64,000 bases of DNA from Diadema antillarum. Its lineage: Eukaryota. The stretch lies in contig NW_027271515.1 in the NCBI RefSeq assembly GCF_040938485.1, positions 62,001-126,000 of the forward strand. The letters run 5' to 3'. Below are positions 31,938-44,677 of the stretch, piece after piece. Each line of letters begins with the position of its first letter. The stretch's first letter is position 1. The position numbers and the translations under genes are program-made. The notes beneath the pieces are model-generated. The model searched no databases. It was not told the DNA's origin and saw only the letters and a list, made by a program, of their open reading frames with translations.

Positions 31938-34271
31938 ATGGCCACTCCAAATGAGGTCGACGAGTTCCATGATTCTCAGCAGTGGTGTCCGTTGTGCTCC
32001 GAGCGCATAACAGACCCCAAAATATTGCAATGTTTGCACAGTTTCTGTCGGCCTTGTTTGGAAAAACGTGTTGCTGAGCCAGATCGTGTCAAATGCCCGG
32101 TTTGCATGCATGAAACATCACTCGGTGATATGGGACTGGATGGTCTCACCTCTAGTATCCTCATCAACAATATCCTTGATGTTGTTAGCAGTCATGATGA
32201 TGAATTGGATGGCAGAATGTTTGGCAGTGCAGAAAACCACAGGCGACAGTGCAGCTCCTGCGAAGAAGGTCAGATTGCTACGAGGGTGTGCAAGGACTGC
32301 AGTGAGGCTCTGTGTGAAAGTTGTGTCCTAGCTCACCAGCGTGTGCGCCTCACGAAAGATCACACCATTGTGTACTTGGAAGGGGTAAATGGCAGCAGAC
32401 CTCATGCCAAGGTCCCAATGCTCTATCCCTACCATCAGTATGGCCTTGGGTACCAACCTCCGAAGATGCAACCTGTCTCAGACAGACCACCAAGCTACTG
32501 TGATATCCACAAGGAGATGCTCCGTCTGTATTGCGACACCTGTTACAAGGCCATCTGTCGAGAGTGCACCATGGTAGAGCATAGTGGCCACAGCGTAGTC
32601 TACCTCCAAGATGCTGTTCAAGATAGCAAAGCCATGACCATGCGCATGCTGAATGATGCCAAAGCCAGCTCCAGAGCACTGCAGGAAAGCTTAGCCCACA
32701 CACAAGCAATGGCAGAAAGAGTTGAGATCAGGTGCCAGGCTGTGGCGTCTGAGGTGCGCTCAAATATCCGTCGGCACAAAATGGCACTGGATGAGAGAGA
32801 GAGGGAATTGCTGCGCAAGGTTGAAGTCATTCGGCAAGTAAAAAGCAAATCTCTTCATTCGCAAGCTGATGATATCCAACAGGCAATGGAGAGCTTGACA
32901 GAGTGTATGGGAACTGTTGAGAAAGCTCTTGACTCGGGCACAGATGTGGATGTCCTGAAAACAAAAGAAAAGATCACATCTGAGATGCGTACACTGAAGA
33001 GTCTGAGGGGCTATCTCCAGCCTCAGGAAGATGATGGGATCTTCTTTACTCCACCTGATAGTGTCCTGCACACTGCCATACTATCAATGGGATACATCAG
33101 CAGTAGTGCTTACCCCCCAAATTGCTTTGCCACTGGTGATGGATTGAAGCGTGCCTTGGTTGGAAAGATTGCTTCTTTTATGGTTCACTCTAAAGATCAC
33201 AACAATGAACCGAGATGTGTAGGCGGAGAGGTCTTGGAGGTGACAGTACGTGGGCCAGACGGGGTCTTGTACCCAGCAGAAGTCATCGATCAACAAAATG
33301 GCACATACCTGGGCAGCTATCGACCTACACTCGAAGGACAGCATTACCTGTCAGTTACCATCAAGGGGAAGAATATCATGGACAGTCCATTTGTTATCAC
33401 AGCACGAAATGCACGCAACTTCACCACCATTGGTCCAGCCCTCATGACTTTCGGAGGTGAAGGAGAAGGAGATGGACAGCTTTGCCGACCTTGGGGGATT
33501 GCTGTTGATGCTGATGGCCGTATCATCGTGGCAGACCGCAGCAACAATCGCATCCAGATATTCAACTCAGATGGCTCCTTCAGTCATAAGTTTGGCTCAC
33601 CAGGAACGCGTAATGGACAATTTGATCGCCCAGCAGGAGTTGCAGTTAGTGGTGAAGGCAACATCATCGTGGCAGACAAGGATAATCACCGCTGTCAAGT
33701 CTTCACTGTGCAGGGCCAGTTCCTTTTCAAGTTTGGTGAGAAGGGGAGTAAGAATGGCCAGTTCAACTATCCCTGGGATGTTGCAGTGAACAGCGAGGGG
33801 AAAATCCTGGTTTCAGACACCCGGAACCACAGGATTCAGCAGTTCAACCCAGATGGTACTTTCATCAATAAGTTTGGCTTTGAGGGAGCACTGTGGAAGC
33901 ACTTTGATTCGCCCAGAGGGGTGGCATACAATAATGATGGCCACATAGTTACTACCGACTTCAACAACCACCGTTTGGTAGTGATTCATTCTGACTTCCA
34001 GTCTGCACAGTACCTTGGCTCTGAGGGAACCAACAATGGCCAGTTTCTGAGACCTCAGGGAGTGGCTGTGGATCAGGAGGGCTATATCATCGTTGCCGAC
34101 TCGCGTAACCATCGCATTCAAGTATTTCAGCCAAATGGCAGCTTTTTGTGTAAGTTTGGCATGCCAGGTACAGGCTCTGGGCAGCTTGATCGCCCATCTG
34201 GTATTTGTGTATCTCCTGATGGTGTCATACTGGTTGTAGATTTCGGAAACAATCGTGTGCAAGCATTCTGA
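31938..34271 (+). CDS. TRIM71: E3 ubiquitin-protein ligase TRIM71 / lin-41 (RING, two B-boxes, coiled coil, filamin, six NHL repeats), intronless CDS, 777 aa
   Basis: RING CPLC...CLHSFC..C...CPVC; B-boxes CSSC...C..C...C..C...H...H and CDIH...C..C....C..C....H..H; filamin ATGDGL...; NHL repeats QLCRPWGI, QFDRPAGV, QFNYPWDV, HFDSPRGV, QFLRPQGV, QLDRPSGI. The segment FGFEGALWKHFDSPRGVA matches TRIM71 as I recall it. First in-frame ATG is at 31938, after an in-frame TAA at 31890. Confidence 0.97.
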   Translation: MATPNEVDEFHDSQQWCPLCSERITDPKILQCLHSFCRPCLEKRVAEPDRVKCPVCMHETSLGDMGLDGLTSSILINNILDVVSSHDDELDGRMFGSAENHRRQCSSCEEGQIATRVCKDCSEALCESCVLAHQRVRLTKDHTIVYLEGVNGSRPHAKVPMLYPYHQYGLGYQPPKMQPVSDRPPSYCDIHKEMLRLYCDTCYKAICRECTMVEHSGHSVVYLQDAVQDSKAMTMRMLNDAKASSRALQESLAHTQAMAERVEIRCQAVASEVRSNIRRHKMALDERERELLRKVEVIRQVKSKSLHSQADDIQQAMESLTECMGTVEKALDSGTDVDVLKTKEKITSEMRTLKSLRGYLQPQEDDGIFFTPPDSVLHTAILSMGYISSSAYPPNCFATGDGLKRALVGKIASFMVHSKDHNNEPRCVGGEVLEVTVRGPDGVLYPAEVIDQQNGTYLGSYRPTLEGQHYLSVTIKGKNIMDSPFVITARNARNFTTIGPALMTFGGEGEGDGQLCRPWGIAVDADGRIIVADRSNNRIQIFNSDGSFSHKFGSPGTRNGQFDRPAGVAVSGEGNIIVADKDNHRCQVFTVQGQFLFKFGEKGSKNGQFNYPWDVAVNSEGKILVSDTRNHRIQQFNPDGTFINKFGFEGALWKHFDSPRGVAYNNDGHIVTTDFNNHRLVVIHSDFQSAQYLGSEGTNNGQFLRPQGVAVDQEGYIIVADSRNHRIQVFQPNGSFLCKFGMPGTGSGQLDRPSGICVSPDGVILVVDFGNNRVQAF

Positions 34272-34277
34272 AGTAAA

Positions 34278-34285
34278 TACGGGTA
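34278..34285 (+). promoter_or_regulatory. miR-100/99 8mer seed match (TACGGGTA)
   Basis: Reverse complement of miR-100 nt 2-8 plus A. Only 6 nt past the TRIM71 stop, so efficacy may be reduced. Confidence 0.4.
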
Positions 34286-35774
34286 CTTGAAGTAGGCCTT
34301 TTGTGTTACGAGGTCTGAAGTATTTTATTGGAGGATAATTCCGGGCTTGTGATATCCCCACTTTCGTTTGCATCATATGCCTGTAACACTCTAAAATGTT
34401 GTGTTTGTGTGTAAATTAAAGTGCTCAAAGCAAAGTGTTTAACATTCTCTGACTCAAACTTCCAGGCAGGTTAGCAATTATGATCTGATCAACAATGATA
34501 TGCGGGTACTCAAACAATGATGAGATGTTATTTTTCTGCTACATATCTGCCCTTCATCAATTGAATTGTAATGGCGTTGCAGTTTTATTCTGGCAATTTT
34601 AGGAAAATGAAATAGAGTTTCATCTTGAACAAACTCCTCATTCTGTGTACAAACTGTATGTTTGTGTATACCATGACCTGCACTAAGGCCATCTTGTTCC
34701 GTTTCAAGTACAAGTCTTGGGTTATGAGGATTGCTTTAATATTATGTGCTTATTGTGATTTATGGTAGACAAAAATACAAAGGCTTGCTGCGCATTCGAA
34801 GTATGGGCAAAGAGTTTCCTTGTTACAATTAAATGACTGGAAACGGCTTCTTTTTATCTTTTCAAATTCAGTGTCAGGCCATAACATAATGAACAAGAGA
34901 GACACATAGCGCTTTATGCTCAGCTGAGTGTAACTTTATATGCTGTTTCACATATTGGCCAACTGGTGCAGTAGGCTTTTGCTTGAATACCAGGCATAAG
35001 AACTCGTCATTTTAGCTGGCATCAGTGTTGTGTTGAGATACCAGAGCATCAGTCCAGAAAATGACAAGTACAGACATAATCTGCTGTGTCTGGCATAGTG
35101 TTCCTGCTCTATAAGCCTACTCTCTTTGTGCTGTGCATTATACGATACAAACCGAGCAGATGTTTATCAATTTGATGTGTAAAACGAAAACGAGTACCCA
35201 ACTACAGTGTAACTTATGGATTTAATAGCATGAAATGAGTTTCATATACACTGTTCATTGAAATTAGTAGGGGTTTTTTGTTGGTTTTTTTTTAATGGTT
35301 GTTCAGTGCGACTTGTGCATTTTTTTTTTGTCAAAATGATTGCATAATACATTGAAAAAATGTTGTGCTTTTGTATACCTTAGTTTGCCCTGAAGGCAAT
35401 ACTCGACCCAGACTAACTATTTTCTTAAGATGACATGCTTTGCCTTGACAAACTGCTTGCACTGAATACATCAGATAGTGCATTCACACCACCATCACTA
35501 ATTAGCCAGTTTCAGGCTTCATTTCATTTTGTTACCAAATCTTAAACAATCCTGCTTTCTGAGCATACAGTACATTGTACGTGTTGAAAATGACTACATA
35601 CATTGTACAGTCATCAAAGGGCATGCCCATGACAAGAGTTGATTTATTTATTGTTTCCCCCTTTTTTTAATTTAGTTTTTATTTTGACTGAAAGGGTAAG
35701 GGTTGAAAGGAAGGAGATGAGATTTCTTGATGTGGTTGACCACTCCCAATAACAAACATGGCTGCGCTTGGTAT

Positions 35775-35807
35775 CTACCTCAATGTGATTTGGTGTGCTC
35801 TACCTCA
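35775..35807 (+). promoter_or_regulatory. Tandem let-7 8mer sites (CTACCTCA at 35775 and 35800)
   Basis: Two perfect 8mers 25 nt apart, 1.5 kb downstream of the TRIM71 stop. lin-41/TRIM71 is the classic let-7 target. Confidence 0.8.
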
Positions 35808-36561
35808 AGAAGAAGATTACATGTGGTTCAAGATTTCTTTGTCCACGTCTCAGGTTCAAGAATGATGAAGTGATTGTAAATTGCTTATAAAACATGCATG
35901 TGTTGTAGATTACGAGGTAAATTGTTTATCCTTGAATTGAAGGAAAAAACTGTACAAACTTGCAGCTGCATTTACTGATATTATATGATGAACAGGCTTC
36001 AAGTGCAAAGCATTTTGTTGCCATCGCTTGATTAAAAATGCAAATTTATATTATTTAGATATAATATTCATTTATATGTATTGTGACTTAGCAAAAAAAA
36101 AGAGTAAATTGTTGTGCAGGGATTTGTGTGGGTTCATTTTAGTTGGGCATATAAATGTGAAAATATTAACTACAATAGTAAAGTTTTGCTGTCATTTTGG
36201 ATGTTACTCCCCAGTTGTTACTTAGTATTACCATATAAACCTCTCATTGTCATAGACAATTTAAATTTTTTGTATTGAGCAATGCAACAGAATCCTGAAT
36301 ATTGTACAGCTAGCTTCATTTTCAGCTAATCCAAGTGGCGTTACTGCTGACAATATAAAGCTGTATTACATGTGAAATGTTTTTCATACCAAGTCTTGCA
36401 GCAGTTACATTGTATATGATTTGATTATTGTGTGCATGCATTATATATAAATGTGGCTACCAGTTGCACATTGTTTGATACAGTGTTGTACATGTACCAA
36501 CCACATTTGTAAAAGTTGGAGGCACTTTTATTTCATTCTTCAGGTTTATCAGTTTGTTATG

Positions 36562-36569
36562 CTCAGGGA
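36562..36569 (+). promoter_or_regulatory. miR-125/lin-4 8mer seed match (CTCAGGGA)
   Basis: Perfect 8mer in the putative TRIM71 3' UTR. Confidence 0.55.
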
Positions 36570-37956
36570 TGCCTTTTTAACTGATAATGCTCCCAATGAA
36601 ATCTAAGCTATTATTGCAGAGGGAGCCTAAAATGTAACACTAAATGTTTCTTTTAGTTGAAATATGCCACATTTTCTAACATTATGCTGACTTTGCCAAA
36701 GATGATGTAGTATTAGCTGCCAAGGGAAATATACTGCAGCCTGAGTTAAAATACCTTAACTGTCCACTGTAAGATGTAAGGTCACATTTGTTTATTTATT
36801 TGTTTGTTTGTTGCAGTTACCTTTCTTAATTTCATCAACATTATTGCCCACTCATTCACAGCTTTGACATTTTGTTTTAGCGATCCCTCCAGTATTTAGT
36901 GAGCTCAGTCGGTGTGCATAATTGTTTACCATATTATTCAAATTGTGTTTTTGCAGTGATACTGTGTGTTTGCATGATGATTATGAAATACCCCACTTTT
37001 GACAGTACATGTACCACGTCGAAGCATGTTGGTCCAGTCAGGCTTTCCATATAGAGTTATTTTGTTAGGCATGTAAGTTGTAAAATGTCATTGTTTGAGC
37101 CCTCAAGATTTTCTGCACATCGTATACGCCTTAGACCCAGTTAGCGAGGGGATTCAAGAGTAGCAGCTCAATTAATTCGCCACCCACCCAAGTACATTAA
37201 AAAAACCACAGATAGTACCGGTCTGCAAAAACAGTATGTGTATCGGAGCTTAAAGGATATTAAAAGACATTTTTTAAAGCCAAAACTATACGATCCCTTT
37301 AAATGCTCATTAGTAATGGTTGACTCTCGACACTCATTATTCTTTGGCCATTTGTGTACAGTGTAGGCCTACTTACACAGAGATCAGTGATTACACAGAG
37401 AAAGTACACTTTTGTAGTACCCAATTTGTTACAGATATTCTCGAATACACCCAAGCTGGGCCAGACTTTTCTCCGTGGTATCCCCATGTTACCAGGTCTT
37501 TAAAGCCACTTCCCTGAAAATCACATAACTCCCATTTTTGTTGTTGTTGTCCTTTTGTTTTTTAAGTGTGTTTACACGTATGTAACTGCCACACTGCTAC
37601 AGTGAAGATTCATTGGTTTTGAAGCACAGCAGAATATGATAACAGGAGGCTTATGATCGTAAGTATGGAATGAGGCATGACTAATCTTGGATCATGGGGA
37701 AATTGGCTGATGTCACTATAATAACAAGCCTAGGGTATAGTTAGTCCTAAACTTTTGAATTTGATTCAAAATAGATTTAACTTTTATCACGTCTATCATT
37801 TACCACAATGCACCGTAGTTCCATTATGTTCCAAAGTGTGCTCTCTGAAGGGCCTCCTATACATTGTACGTGTGAAATGTGAAATACTGCAGATGCTGAA
37901 ATTTCACAGAATTTAAAAGAAAAGATTTTGTACATCCTCCCACAATCAAAATGATA

Positions 37957-37959
37957 ATA

Positions 37960-38007
<48 letters not shown>

Positions 38008-38110
38008 TAAATATAATCGTAATCATAATCATAATCATAATGTATAATATAATAATAATAATAGTAATAATATAATACAATAATGATAATAATAATAATA
38101 ATAATAATAA
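37957..38110. repeat. (AAT)n microsatellite
   Basis: Long imperfect AAT/AATC run. Confidence 0.95.
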
Positions 38111-38860
38111 AGAATAATGATAATGAAGAATTGAATAACCTCCTAAGATATCAGGTAAAATATCGGGTACAGTGTATGAAGTACAACTCTATAAGAGAAC
38201 TGCAATGTATGTGTACATTCAACATGGCCTGGCAGGCAGCAGCTGCACACAGTTGCCCATCCTGCTGTGTGTACATGTATGCAAGCCTACATGCATGTTT
38301 AGTAATGGGAGCTGTATGGTATCCGCATTCCTGATCACAAATATAACCACCTGCAAAACTGATTTAACAACTCACAATTCGCAATTTTTCTTGTAATTTT
38401 TTTTTAAATTTTTTTTTGCATCTACAGTAATCACCAAGGCATACTGGTTTCCTAATTATCAATAGCTAAGAATGTAGAGGCCATTGCCTATCTCTGACTA
38501 CCTTGCCACAATTAATTCATAAAGAGGGGTGGAGATGGGGAGTCTGTCTCAAGTTTTTGCGTTTCATGAGACTGGGATCAGTTGCGGGATGTTATGTGTT
38601 CCAAAGCCACCAACAGTCATATTCAGGGCATGTTATGTAGTTGGAGGTGAAGTTTTGTTTTAAATCATTACTCCTTAAGTCACTCCCTTCAGTGTACCAG
38701 ATCACATCTGAAAACAGCTGAATAACTTATGTTAACTCTTAATTAAGTTCGAAACTACCGATGTGAGAAGTAGAAGTAATGAGGATTCCTTGATTTCCTC
38801 AGCATGAAAAGGTCAGCTGGCCTTGTGCTGCAATGCTGACTATGCTGATAGCAGGCATTT

Positions 38861-38868
38861 CTACCTCA
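38861..38868 (+). promoter_or_regulatory. let-7 8mer seed match (CTACCTCA)
   Basis: Third perfect let-7 8mer downstream of TRIM71. Weaker matches at 40079 (7mer-m8) and 40264 (7mer-A1). Confidence 0.55.
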
Positions 38869-41414
38869 AGACTCAGTATTACCAGTACACCTCAAATCCT
38901 GTTTTTTTTTCCCCATCCTGTTTTCCACCAAGCTAGTTGTATTATCTATGCGATGAATTAACAGATCTATTCGTGATTTGAGTGATATCATCTCTGAAAT
39001 AGAACAAACTCTCATTGGTAGCTTGATTGCATACAATTTTAGGAACAAGTCCTCGATTCATAGGATGTATGACACACGGACTGCAATTTCAGTTGCCATA
39101 TAAGCACAAAAACACATTAAAAGGATGGCATCCTCCTTCTCATTCATCATCAACATCAAATAGTCTTTATCTCATGCTTTCACAATAAGGCACAAACTGC
39201 TTTTTAACTTTCTATAAACCAAGATTATTAGAATTTTTGTGATTGCATAAAGAGAAAATGGGTAGTTTCAATCACAAAATGTTTAATTACAGTGCAGATA
39301 CACTGTATGTCCATCCTAACGTACACATTACAGTAAATTAATAGAAATAAGAATTTCTGTAAAAATTTGCTCAGGTTTGATTGAACACAATACAAATTGT
39401 ACCATCAGCATCAAGGAGACTTTTTTTCCTTACTTTTTTGAAGTCATATGCCAATAAAGATGCCAAATAACTGACACCCAGCATGAATAAGATTCAGGCG
39501 ACATAAGACTATAAACTCAGTAAACATTTACATACACTCATTGACTCATGCTGTGTATACTGCCTGTATACACGTATGTTGTGTCATTTAGTTATTTAAC
39601 TGACTCAATGCATTTGGGGTATCAAAATGTCATCAATATTTTATGAAAGTATAGTACAGTTTGATTAGATGTGTGTTTAATGAATTGCCTTCATAATTCA
39701 AATGTTTGTTTACGGTTCAAGGAGTCTTTTTTGTGTTCTGACCAATTTTGGTTCGTTTCATTTCACACAATGTACACAGCACCTCCTGCACAATTTCCTT
39801 TTCTTTTGTATGCCTTTGTCATTATTATTGTATGCATTATTCAGTATTTGTAGAGTGCACCCAGTTCATGTATAATGTTTAATGTCTGGTCAGGTCAATC
39901 AAATCATATTGGTATATTTGTGAAAGACGTGCTGCAGGAGAAGGGATTTGTGGGTCTGTCCCTATCATTTTAGATCTCTTTAACATCTAGACGTCTAGTT
40001 GCTCACCTCATACACCTAAATGTTTATCTTGTATATGAAATTGTTAATTAGAGATTGTCTGAATTTGCAATTGTTGTGCTACCTCTGAAAAAAATGACAG
40101 CTTTTTAAAAAGAATGTCAATATATTCATGTTCAGTGTGGTAATGTAATGAGAGTATTTGAATTTCTAAGAAATGACTTTTAAAAATGATGTGTATATCC
40201 ATGTTATATGTGTATCGTGATCTGAGGTGCAAAGTTGTGTAGATTGACTGGGAGAAGAGACTTTACCTCAGACACACACTGGTAAAAGAGACAGGAAACT
40301 ATTATCTCAGGCTAAAACTCTAAGGTAGTCATACCACAAAGAAATACAGTTGAAGCAAAGCTTATGTGCTGTTGTGTGCTAGTAATACCGCAAACAGTCT
40401 AAGACTGATGTGCTCAGTTTTCAACGTTTCATGCATGTATCTGCTGTCATTGCTCTAAGCAAGATGGGTGAAAAAAACCCAGCTGCCTACGCCATAGTGT
40501 CGCCTTCTGTGCTTGCAATGTAAAACAGCGCTTGCTTCAAAGTATACCCCTCACTCTTGTTCCTGCCATGTTATATGCTTCAGGTTTGCTCAGTAAGAGG
40601 AAAAAGTGTTGTGATGTTGTTGTGTTTTTTATATGAAATGCTGCAAGAGTGATTAATACAGGGTGCCATTCCTGTTGTGAACATGCTTATGTTTTGTTTG
40701 ATTTATTTCCTAGTTTGCTACATGTATGTTGAATGAATACAGTAACTTTCTTTGGAGCAGTCTTATTGCTTGTTCTGAAATATCTAAACAGCACCTGATT
40801 CTGTGTATGGCACAATGATTTTCTGGCTTTGAAATAGTCCTGATACAGATCCAAAATGGATGACAGATTCCAAACTCAGTATATAGTCCTTTGATAATGA
40901 GTAGATTTATTTCTTTTGATTGAATTTGTGATTTGTAAGACTAATGCTGCAGGGTGCTAGAATTTCTTCAGGCCCAAATAATGAATGTAAGTTTGTAAGT
41001 TGTGACCTCATTCGCAGAGACTTACATTGTATCTACCATGGTGCATGTATGCTTTAAGTTTGTCTGTTTTTTATCAGAGAGAAGCTGTTTCAAAGTGCAT
41101 AGTATGCGGCTGTTCTGTACAAAATCAAAACCAAACTGATTCACCACTTCCTATGGGGCTGCAGCAATGTGTATTGGTATACTTTAACATCAGTGAGGGG
41201 TTGATGGTGTTGTTGATTATATCTCTTTTCTTTGTGTTTTATTGGCATGGGTTCACATGGTTTCTTAGAAGATTCTGGGTTCTCCAGAAATGATGAAACA
41301 TCACCTTCTTTCCATTCTATTTGTAATACTGAAGGATCATTGCACTAATACAGTTAGAGCATATATTCTTATTTGCCCTTTAAAATATATAATTTCTTTC
41401 ACATGAATCTGACA

Positions 41415-41422
41415 TACGGGTA
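41415..41422 (+). promoter_or_regulatory. miR-100/99 8mer seed match (TACGGGTA)
   Basis: Second perfect miR-100 8mer, about 50 nt upstream of an AATAAA. Confidence 0.5.
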
Positions 41423-41465
41423 TAATACAAAGAGAACAGCAAACAGATAAAGAATCAATATTTGT

Positions 41466-41475
41466 ATTAAATAAA
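41466..41475 (+). terminator. Candidate distal poly(A) signal of TRIM71 (overlapping ATTAAA/AATAAA)
   Basis: ATTAAATAAA. Other AATAAA at 39453 and 43004. The site actually used cannot be determined from sequence. Confidence 0.4.
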
Positions 41476-41724
41476 GAATGTAGCATGTGAACATGAACTT
41501 AAGGGGCTACCTCTGCTGTTTACACAGCAACTGGTAAGTGACATCTCATAGCAGCTGGTACAGGTATTACTCATTTTAACTCCATCGTGTTTTCAGAACA
41601 CTTGACGTTGTGCAGTATTCAAGTCATCAAGCCAGTAACGTACTGGTAGCCAAAGTGGTTCAGGAAACTTACAATTCGTAATGGAACAATGTTAAGGCAG
41701 TTGTTTGAGAAGGGCATGGGTAAA

Positions 41725-42241: not shown

Positions 42242-44677
42242 AAGTCATAGAGATAATGTCAGCATCTCAGTCCACCAACAGTATTTTGTATTTGCTCTTC
42301 CTGCTCTGAAATCAAGTAAGAAATCGGATCAATCCTGTGGTCAAACCGCCGAGTTACCCTTGCACTTGAAACAGCCTCTTGTGTGTGAATGTAGCAGCAG
42401 CATCATGACCTTTTCTTCTATTGTGATAAATGTATGCACAGCTACAATTATGTTCTTAGGAATTTGCAATAATGCATTCTGAGCATGGTATGGAAGATTA
42501 GCAGTAATGAGTGATTTCTAGAGTATTGACTTAACCATGAAAGTAATTAATATGATTTAGCATTGACCGTGAGGAATTTTTCTTTGTACGTGTAGAAACA
42601 TCATTCATGGCATTTAAAAATCATGTTCTCTGTATTCCGACTGCAACCTGGTGGTTGTAGAATCCAGATAGCATTTGATATTTGATATTCTAGGGGAACA
42701 CTGAAGTTACTCAGTTTTGCCCTTTAATCATAGTATGACAGATGTTCCAGCAATTTCAAGTCATAGTATTGACACTCATTAGATACAGAGACTTGGAAAA
42801 TGCAGTGGCAATGGCGTTCATGTTACTGTGGTCCAGAAAATGTTAGGTCTATGCATTAATTCAGAACTAGGATGTATTTTAAAACTTGTGACTGTAAGTA
42901 GCTATACCAGTAGGAAAAATGATTACCGGTAGTTCATTCACCATCATAAATTGATTATATTTCATTTCATTGCATTTGTTGTTGCACAGTTTCATTGAAT
43001 GAAAATAAATGTTGAGAATGGCACCAACATTTGTTGTAAAGTTTTATTCTTTCTGTCCTTCAGGTAACTATCTTACAATCCTGAGAGTGTCAAATTGTAT
43101 GTGGCAAACAGCAAAAGTCAAAACAGAAAGGCAAAACAGAAACACATTTTTTGTCTTCAGTTGTCGCACATAGCTGGTACGTTGCACAACGTCATTGGCG
43201 ACAAGATTGATTCCCACTCTTGGCACATTCCGTATTTGTTATGACACGTTGACATAGCTGGCAAAGTTTAATTCCTCTAGAGAAACGTAAATTGATGTTG
43301 ATATTGGTGAGATTCCTCTATTGTGTACAATCAGGAAGCGTTTGTTGATGTGAGCTACAAGTAGATCTGTTTTCATGAGTTAGCTCTGAGAAGACTGGTT
43401 ATTTCAAGAATGTGCTGATGTTTTCTGTGTAAATTGGTTAATTTTTGAAGCATCTGACAGTGAGGCTGGGCTGTGTTGTCTGTTGTGTATTAAAATCAAT
43501 TGGATTCTAAAGTACAGTATGCTATATATTTAGCATGTCTAATTTGTGCAAATTTGGACTTCCCGACAATTTCATGAGTGGTTTAATTGTGTATCAGTTC
43601 ACACGGGTAGGCATTCCCAGATACTGTTTACATGTACTGTGTACTGCATACCAGTACATATGCATGTGGGCATGTATGTTGCATTCATGTCAATGTTAAT
43701 ATTTTTGTGTATTGTTAATAGTTGTGAATAGCACCCGATTCACAAAATTTGCAAACGTATAAAACTGCAAACATGGTGTATACAGTCTTGGTGATTGGCC
43801 ACCACATTTGGGGTTATTTTCAGCTACATTTTCATGTCGTCTTCTCCTATCTCTGCAAATTTCCCTTCTTTTCTCTTCTTCCATTTACCTTCACACTTCC
43901 CCACCCTGTCAAAAAGAGATATGTATCGGTACACTGAGTATTTTGCCAGCAAAAAGACTTGAGAGATACAGGTAGATAGAAATTATAGTGGGATAGAAAA
44001 ATGCATACATGTGGGCACCATGCAGTGTTTCTTGGAATCATAAGCATTTGATAAATACATGTACAAAATGTGCATTATGTGTACATCCATCGGCATGCTG
44101 AGATGTGTTGATGTACTATGTACACACGACTATCACTGACGTTACATGTGCTCACATATCGACATAGTATAGGAAGTCCAGGCTGAACTCCAGGCAGTGT
44201 GGTTGCTGATGAGATCAGGGAGGTGAATGCACTGCCATGCTACACAAATGTGTTACATCAGGGAGCACCTCCCTGGTTACATGCAGTGTGTTGGGTTGGC
44301 TGCATGTACCAAAGCGTAGTGTTGCACACTCAATGTACGTTCCATTTATATTATACTGGTACATATTTCATGTGATTCCATTTAACAATCACTTGTTCCT
44401 CTCGGCCATATCCAGCATGTATTGCAAACACTGTATCATCGTGAAGTTCCGCGGTGTTGGTCATGTCACGCAGGGGAACCTCTTTGTTTTACCACAGTGA
44501 ATGACTCTGATCAGGGAATTGCATCATATTACATAACAGCTTGCTTGCCCTTTGATTCCCTGTATCTTCTGAGGACTACAGCCCCAGTTGGTTGGGCTGC
44601 TAATTCTAAAGCATGATGAATATTTGCTGAAGGCAAAATGGGCTCTGAGCCAAAGAATTTCCTTTTCCTCTACTTAA

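Follow-up and report, generated by a model that had tools for sequence, protein, structure and literature searches.

The question raised by this locus was whether two copies of one 8-nt word, which lie close together about 1.5 kb 3' of the stop codon of a sea-urchin gene and on the same strand, are the let-7 sites of LIN-41/TRIM71 and whether they work as a cooperative pair. Control of lin-41/TRIM71 by let-7 through two 3'UTR sites is known from worms, zebrafish and mammals (PMC13622164, PMC11230530, PMC1874663). We analysed a 64,000-nucleotide stretch of Diadema antillarum DNA, referred to here as the window, and all positions are those of the window. An earlier note on this DNA had likened the two copies to the LCS1 and LCS2 sites of C. 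elegans lin-41 and had proposed a conserved or convergent cooperative architecture.

The let-7 8mer pair and its host gene

The gene upstream of the pair was characterised from its open reading frame, a single-exon CDS on the plus strand (31938-34271) that starts with an ATG at 31938, ends with a TGA at 34269-34271 and encodes a predicted product of 777 amino acids. Pfam identified a RING domain, two B-boxes, a filamin domain and six NHL repeats in this product. The best PDB match was the TRIM71 filamin-NHL chain 6fpt (E 1.5e-177), with TRIM71 structures far ahead of those of Thin, TRIM2/3 and Brat. The top database match was a TRIM71-like protein of Diadema setosum (99% identity), the 90% cluster of the product included TRIM71 of Strongylocentrotus purpuratus, Lytechinus variegatus and L. 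pictus, and named TRIM71 matches ran from echinoderms through mammals. Domain architecture and TRIM71 matches together mark the gene as the host expected for let-7 sites of this family, and on this sequence evidence it is the LIN-41/TRIM71 orthologue of a Diadema-type sea urchin. Because the host gene is a lin-41 orthologue, the resemblance of the pair to LCS1/LCS2 is expected rather than surprising. At the loci sampled the TRIM71 CDS was one exon in echinoderms, hemichordates, Lingula and Haliotis, and TRIM71 had introns in amphioxus, where the gene spans 13.7 kb, and in Megalops, a fish, where it spans 29.5 kb. Non-coding DNA of the window differed from the D. setosum assembly by 6-15%, which places its source in a sister diadematid, and a run of N at about 27.85-28.0 kb of the window, an assembly gap, appears as X in the ORF translations.

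The word CTACCTCA, which the earlier note had reported twice and 25 nt apart, was recovered at 35775-35782 (site 1) and 35800-35807 (site 2), both on the plus strand, 25 nt apart start to start with 17 nt between them. Each copy is complementary in the sense strand to let-7 nucleotides 2-8 with an A opposite nucleotide 1, and each is invariant in four echinoids. Four copies of CTACCTCA were present in the window, all four on the plus strand, against 1.43 expected on both strands, and by a first-order Markov estimate the 7.2 kb that follow the stop should contain 0.06 copies. The chance expectation for an 8mer pair within 40 nt, an analytic estimate from a first-order Markov model, was about 2e-5 for the 7.2 kb after the stop and 5e-4 for the window on both strands. 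The close pair of CTACCTCA is not a chance occurrence. Repression is optimal when seed starts lie 13-35 nt apart (PMC1874663), which corresponds to about 8-40 nt between sites, and the 25-nt spacing of the pair falls inside this cooperative range as it has been described for closely spaced microRNA sites (Saetrom 2007; Grimson 2007; Briskin 2020).

Pairing beyond the seed was evaluated using RNAduplex on each site with 22 nt of upstream context and compared to flank shuffles that kept the seed. The site calls rest only on the seed, which is universally conserved, and let-7 is identical to let-7a in about three quarters of bilaterians (PMC9161110). The duplex energy was -15.6 kcal/mol for site 1 and -13.0 kcal/mol for site 2, and 71% and 92% of the seed-anchored shuffles, respectively, were at least as stable. 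The urchin sites are seed-only 8mers, and both descriptions given in the earlier note, canonical 8mers with no obvious 3' pairing and a contrast to the bulged worm sites, proved correct. In the worm sites a bulge or G:U in the seed is offset by g11-g16 pairing (PMC9161110), whereas both urchin sites have perfect seeds and neither showed compensatory g11-g16 pairing. The sites of the other urchins, fish and amphioxus likewise had no significant 3' pairing when compared to shuffles, and such pairing was detected at one Ptychodera site only. Conserved RNA structure around the pair was considered and rejected, as RNAalifold gave -4.75 kcal/mol with a weak helix and no covariation and the region folded worse than shuffles. 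The 201-nt region around the pair was less stable than 200 of 200 shuffles (z = +2.2), indicating that it is unusually open, as expected of accessible microRNA sites.

Conservation in echinoids and extent of the putative 3'UTR

Comparison of the orthologous UTRs demonstrated that the pair was retained in all four sea urchins with a spacing of 25-26 nt. The 8mers lie at +1450/+1475 after the stop in D. setosum (25 nt apart), at +955/+981 in S. purpuratus (26 nt apart) and at +846/+872 in L. variegatus (26 nt apart), so the sites are conserved in three other echinoids, in an alignable and near-invariant context. This context forms a conserved two-site module (35757-35807, plus strand) that consists of the seeds and two 5' stretches, 18 nt before site 1 (35757-35774) and 9 nt before site 2 (35791-35799), that are near-invariant between Diadema and the camarodonts. 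In the module 47 of 53 columns (89%) were identical to S. purpuratus and 44 of 53 (83%) to L. variegatus, and identity over the whole aligned block was 49% and 44%, respectively. Changes in the module were limited to two bases before site 1 and to a 1-nt indel with 3-4 substitutions in the 5' half of the spacer. Supplementary or compensatory 3' pairing of let-7 was ruled out as the cause of the conserved flanks by the comparison of duplex energies to shuffles. The invariance of flanks that do not pair suggests that a further factor may bind the module.

Alignment by blastn against S. purpuratus and L. variegatus placed the pair in a conserved 3'UTR island (35752-36037, plus strand) of about 69.5% identity, and the UTR next to this island was not alignable to camarodonts by blastn. 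Between the stop codon and a candidate poly(A) signal three parts aligned between Diadema and camarodonts, namely 34272-34588 (the first ~320 nt), 35752-36037 and 40056-40465, and a fourth short match was found further 3' at about 42969-43027. About 60-110 nt after the let-7 pair lies an almost invariant 50-nt block (35866-35915), present in all four urchins, that contains a UGUAAAU (Pumilio-like) and a UGCAUG (Rbfox-like) motif.

Additional let-7 sites were detected on the plus strand further 3'. A 7mer-m8 at 40079-40085 and a 7mer-A1 at 40264-40270 were conserved in four echinoids with invariant columns, and echinoid TRIM71 as aligned here has four conserved putative let-7 sites, the 8mer pair and these two 7mers. 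The third let-7 8mer, at 38861-38868, was common to D. setosum only and had no alignable camarodont counterpart. A GU-rich GUGUGCU-like motif adjoins the 7mer-m8 at 40079 and recurs in the 40056-40465 island, and the same island holds further invariant blocks, a CTCAGG-containing block, GCTGTTGTGTGCTAG and CACAGTCTAAGACTGA.

Sites for two other microRNAs were also observed. An 8mer for miR-100, TACGGGTA, lies at 34278-34285 and starts 7 nt after the TRIM71 stop; such a stop-proximal miR-100 8mer (2-15 nt after the stop) was found in 7 of 7 echinoderms sampled, covering five classes, and the miR-100 8mer was found at +79 and +102 in two hemichordates. A second miR-100 8mer lies at 41415-41422, some 50 nt 5' of the candidate poly(A) signal. 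An 8mer for miR-125, CTCAGGGA, lies at 36562-36569 in Diadema, at +1670 in S. purpuratus and at +1535 in L. variegatus, which places it ~660-790 nt 3' of the let-7 pair in all three. Camarodonts carry an extra miR-125 7mer-A1 10 nt after let-7 site 2, and Ptychodera has a miR-125 8mer directly adjoining a let-7 8mer shortly after the stop (+39/+49). With let-7, miR-100 and miR-125 sites present, all three members of the ancient miR-100/let-7/miR-125 cluster are represented in the UTR.

The putative 3'UTR was drawn at about 7.2 kb (34272-41490, plus strand) from the conserved islands, the let-7 seed matches, which were all in the sense orientation, and contig coverage. A plausible end is offered by ATTAAATAAA, a candidate poly(A) signal at 41466-41475 (plus strand). 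As the conserved let-7 7mers lie at 40079 and 40264, the functional 3'UTR should reach at least 6.2 kb. The 3'UTR of human TRIM71, which has two let-7 sites, is similar in length at 6,015 nt (PMC11230530).

Among public sequencing runs recorded as RNA, none containing this stretch was found. Four public runs with contigs of unrecorded kind, which cannot show strand, ends or RNA origin and whose coverage holes prove nothing, aligned to 33600-39599 and covered the CDS through the pair at CDS depth. One of these runs, which came from a relative of greater divergence, contained one contig of 5,309 nt that began roughly 400 nt 5' of the ATG, crossed the CDS and ended at 36866. The three D. setosum-like runs gave contigs over ~31.44-35.07 kb and then from 35.13 or 35.29 kb to 37.92 kb at CDS depth, and nothing over 38.4-39.4 kb, where D. 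setosum DNA aligns at 89%. This pattern resembles transcript coverage and would suggest a frequent isoform ending near signals at 37.94-38.11 kb. A microsatellite, (AAT)n, occupies 37941-38126 with AATAAA embedded at 38006 and 38106, and the contigs of the three runs stop just before it. The stop at this tract could reflect the end of a short-UTR isoform, internal priming or an assembly break, and a shorter isoform ending near 37.9-38.1 kb is possible. Logan contigs of S. purpuratus were collinear with the genome and ended 530-773 nt after the stop codon, short of the pair. Placement of the pair within the mature TRIM71 mRNA is putative but well supported indirectly, by the strand bias of let-7 sites described below and by the conserved sites further downstream.

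Let-7 sites at TRIM71 loci of other animals

For 12 other animals, the TRIM71 locus and the 10 kb that follow it were retrieved and scanned for let-7 seed matches. In total 63 sense and 2 antisense matches were found in the 13 TRIM71 downstream regions, a bias that indicates selection at the RNA level. Close 8mer pairs were detected in the brittle star Amphiura (+6157/+6193 after the stop, 36 nt apart) and in two hemichordates, the acorn worms Saccoglossus (+737/+772, 35 nt apart) and Ptychodera (+882/+918, 36 nt apart). The crinoid Anneissia had a pair of 7mer-A1 sites 13 nt apart plus one 8mer, and the starfish Acanthaster had one 8mer and no close pair. Exactly two 8mers were found soon after the stop in amphioxus (Branchiostoma, 210 nt apart) and in the fish Megalops (83 nt apart), and the protostomes Lingula and Haliotis had several let-7 sites with no close 8mer pair. 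A search for a decayed partner of single 8mers, with at most one mismatch and within 60 nt, found none in Acanthaster, Anneissia, Lingula, amphioxus or Megalops. Sense-strand let-7 8mers were also observed upstream of the TRIM71 ATG in Amphiura (19 nt), Saccoglossus (324 nt) and Lingula (195 and 148 nt), which may be 5'UTR sites; in urchins the 1.5 kb before the ATG held none.

Across classes and phyla the pair modules align at their seeds only, and the UTRs are unalignable beyond the class level. MAFFT matched urchin site 1 to site 2 of the other classes and phyla through a common TATCTACCTCAA, the spacers of the brittle-star and hemichordate pairs had no common sequence, and the urchin flanks were absent from them. 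Since only seeds align, orthology of the pair beyond Echinoidea is not demonstrable. Measured against the 13-35 nt optimum, the urchin spacing of 25-26 nt lies inside, the 35-36 nt of the brittle star and hemichordates lies at the upper edge, and the worm (47 nt), fish (81-83 nt) and amphioxus (210 nt) lie outside. Close-pair spacing is not obligatory across the TRIM71 genes compared, as seen from the fish and amphioxus distances and from Acanthaster, Lingula and Haliotis, which have no close 8mer pair. The proposal of a conserved or convergent cooperative architecture was supported as far as this comparison goes: the pair was present in related species, and of the two options conservation holds within Ambulacraria, as judged from the presence of close 8mers. 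Homology to the worm sites is not demonstrable, as the UTRs are unalignable and the site type differs.

The urchin pair was also compared to the characterised systems. Vertebrate TRIM71/Lin-41 is an orthologous host with a long 3'UTR and exactly two strong let-7 sites, and the fish and amphioxus loci, like the urchin sites, have perfect 8mers without significant 3' pairing, with a miR-125 site nearby. Spacing sets them apart: it is 83 nt in Megalops, in agreement with the 81 nt reported for zebrafish lin-41 (PMC1874663), and 210 nt in amphioxus, but 25-26 nt in urchins. They also differ in distance from the stop, the vertebrate sites lying within ~470 nt and the urchin pair at 0.85-1.5 kb. Introns interrupt the vertebrate gene but not the urchin CDS, and with unalignable UTRs site-by-site orthology is not demonstrable. 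The LCS1/LCS2 arrangement of C. elegans lin-41 shares an orthologous host and two let-7 sites with a short spacer, and both sites are needed in the worm. The seed-to-seed spacing is 47 nt in the worm and 25 nt in Diadema, and the worm sites carry imperfect seeds while those of the urchin are perfect and seed-only. The sequence of the worm spacer matters according to Vella 2004 as summarised in PMC1874663, and the urchin spacer is partly invariant. The sequences compared suggest that perfect seed-only 8mers are the deuterostome state, unlike the bulged worm sites.

Proposed mechanism, alternative readings and meaning

We consider it very probable that let-7 binds the 3'UTR of sea-urchin LIN-41/TRIM71 mRNA principally through these two 8mers. 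A late-development rise of mature let-7 would load two let-7 Argonaute complexes onto the two sites and, because the seeds start 25 nt apart, a single GW182/TNRC6 scaffold could bridge both complexes. Cooperative binding would then lead to deadenylation and translational repression and to a sharp switch-off of TRIM71. The conserved 7mers ~4.3 kb further 3' would probably add to this repression, and the miR-100 and miR-125 sites may add to it as well. Cooperativity of the pair is what we infer from the 25-nt spacing alone. In zebrafish both lin-41 sites are needed (PMC1874663), and a passage of PMC9262622 citing Briskin 2020 describes one TNRC6 as holding up to three RISCs, with bridged RISCs binding neighbouring sites cooperatively. 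The bridging of two RISCs by TNRC6 proposed there for closely spaced microRNA sites describes a mode of action, not a family. Adults of S. purpuratus have mature let-7 but embryos contain almost none (PMC3247247), which fits a late switch-off of TRIM71.

Other readings of the pair were weighed against this one. A pair with no role at the RNA level, whether a chance repeat, a fragment of a repeat family, a DNA regulatory motif or an antisense let-7-like microRNA gene, is extremely improbable. No RNA-labelled run covers the pair and the minus strand reads TGAGGTAG twice, which is the 5' 8 nt of let-7, yet the chance expectation is about 2e-5 and the sense bias across 13 species is unexpected for a DNA motif. 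A repeat or transposon origin was rejected as the depth over the pair equalled that of the neighbouring single-copy DNA. An antisense let-7-like hairpin was likewise rejected, with no Rfam match, a minus-strand fold of z = 0.51 against shuffles and no similarity to let-7 beyond 8 nt; Rfam detected no microRNA family, let-7 included, in the 64-kb window. Alternatively the two could be real let-7 sites that act independently and additively, with the close spacing a historical accident such as a small ancient duplication. The range of main-8mer spacing across deuterostomes (25-210 nt), the worm and zebrafish spacings of 47 and 81 nt outside the published optimum (PMC1874663) and the absence of a close pair in Acanthaster speak for independent sites. 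Such sites could, however, have drifted apart, as happened to the remainder of the UTR. The spacing is instead fixed at 25-26 nt among the four urchins and measures 35-36 nt in three further ambulacrarian lineages, which have no spacer sequence in common, and every one of these pairs falls inside the 13-35 nt optimum or at its edge. We therefore regard independent action as unlikely.

The near-invariant stretches 35757-35774 and 35791-35799 raise the further possibility, which we hold tentatively and as somewhat doubtful, that the pair belongs to a composite element whose 5' flanks are recognised by an additional factor, either a second small RNA or an RNA-binding protein, which let-7 action requires or by which it is modulated. 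The flanks add nothing to let-7 pairing and have no structural covariation, the GUGUGCU-like GU-rich motif occurs next to the 7mer-m8 conserved at 40079 and a second time in that island, and a mutation of the 27-nt spacer in C. elegans abolished regulation (Vella 2004, as reported in a passage of PMC1874663). Against this, the flanks matched no known motif or factor and are absent from the brittle star and hemichordates, and with two deep urchin lineages only, a low local mutation rate or selection to keep the context unstructured could account for part of the invariance of ~27 nt. A broader form of this reading, in which the close pair is an ancestral ambulacrarian and possibly bilaterian composite switch whose spacing has stayed cooperative for over 500 million years and whose flanks and spacer bind a co-factor, following the logic of the sequence-dependent worm lin-41 spacer of 27 nt, seems to us quite improbable. 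If it were true, LCS1/LCS2 and the urchin pair would be homologous and the urchin would offer a tractable system for finding the co-factor.

Returning to the preferred reading, in which the 8mers are the principal let-7 sites of TRIM71, the urchin pair adds a real, though expected, instance to a well-known type of regulatory pairing, and current understanding is not overturned by it. A literature search found no description of let-7 sites in sea-urchin TRIM71, although the search was incomplete and an earlier description is possible, and it found no functional test of TRIM71 let-7 sites in any echinoderm. What appears to be new from these comparisons is a close 8mer pair, spaced 25-36 nt, that is common to echinoids, a brittle star and enteropneusts, together with the seed-only character of the deuterostome sites and an echinoid module with invariant flanks that let-7 pairing does not account for.

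The let-7/lin-41 relationship is the founding conserved microRNA-target pair, and its two-site arrangement is now extended, by sequence, to echinoderms and hemichordates. Ambulacraria appear to have kept the sites 25-36 nt apart, and in the sampled chordates they drifted to 83-210 nt. The invariant flanks would provide a small, defined RNA bait for a co-factor search. For sea urchins the prediction is that let-7 switches TRIM71 off late in development, around the larva-to-juvenile transition.
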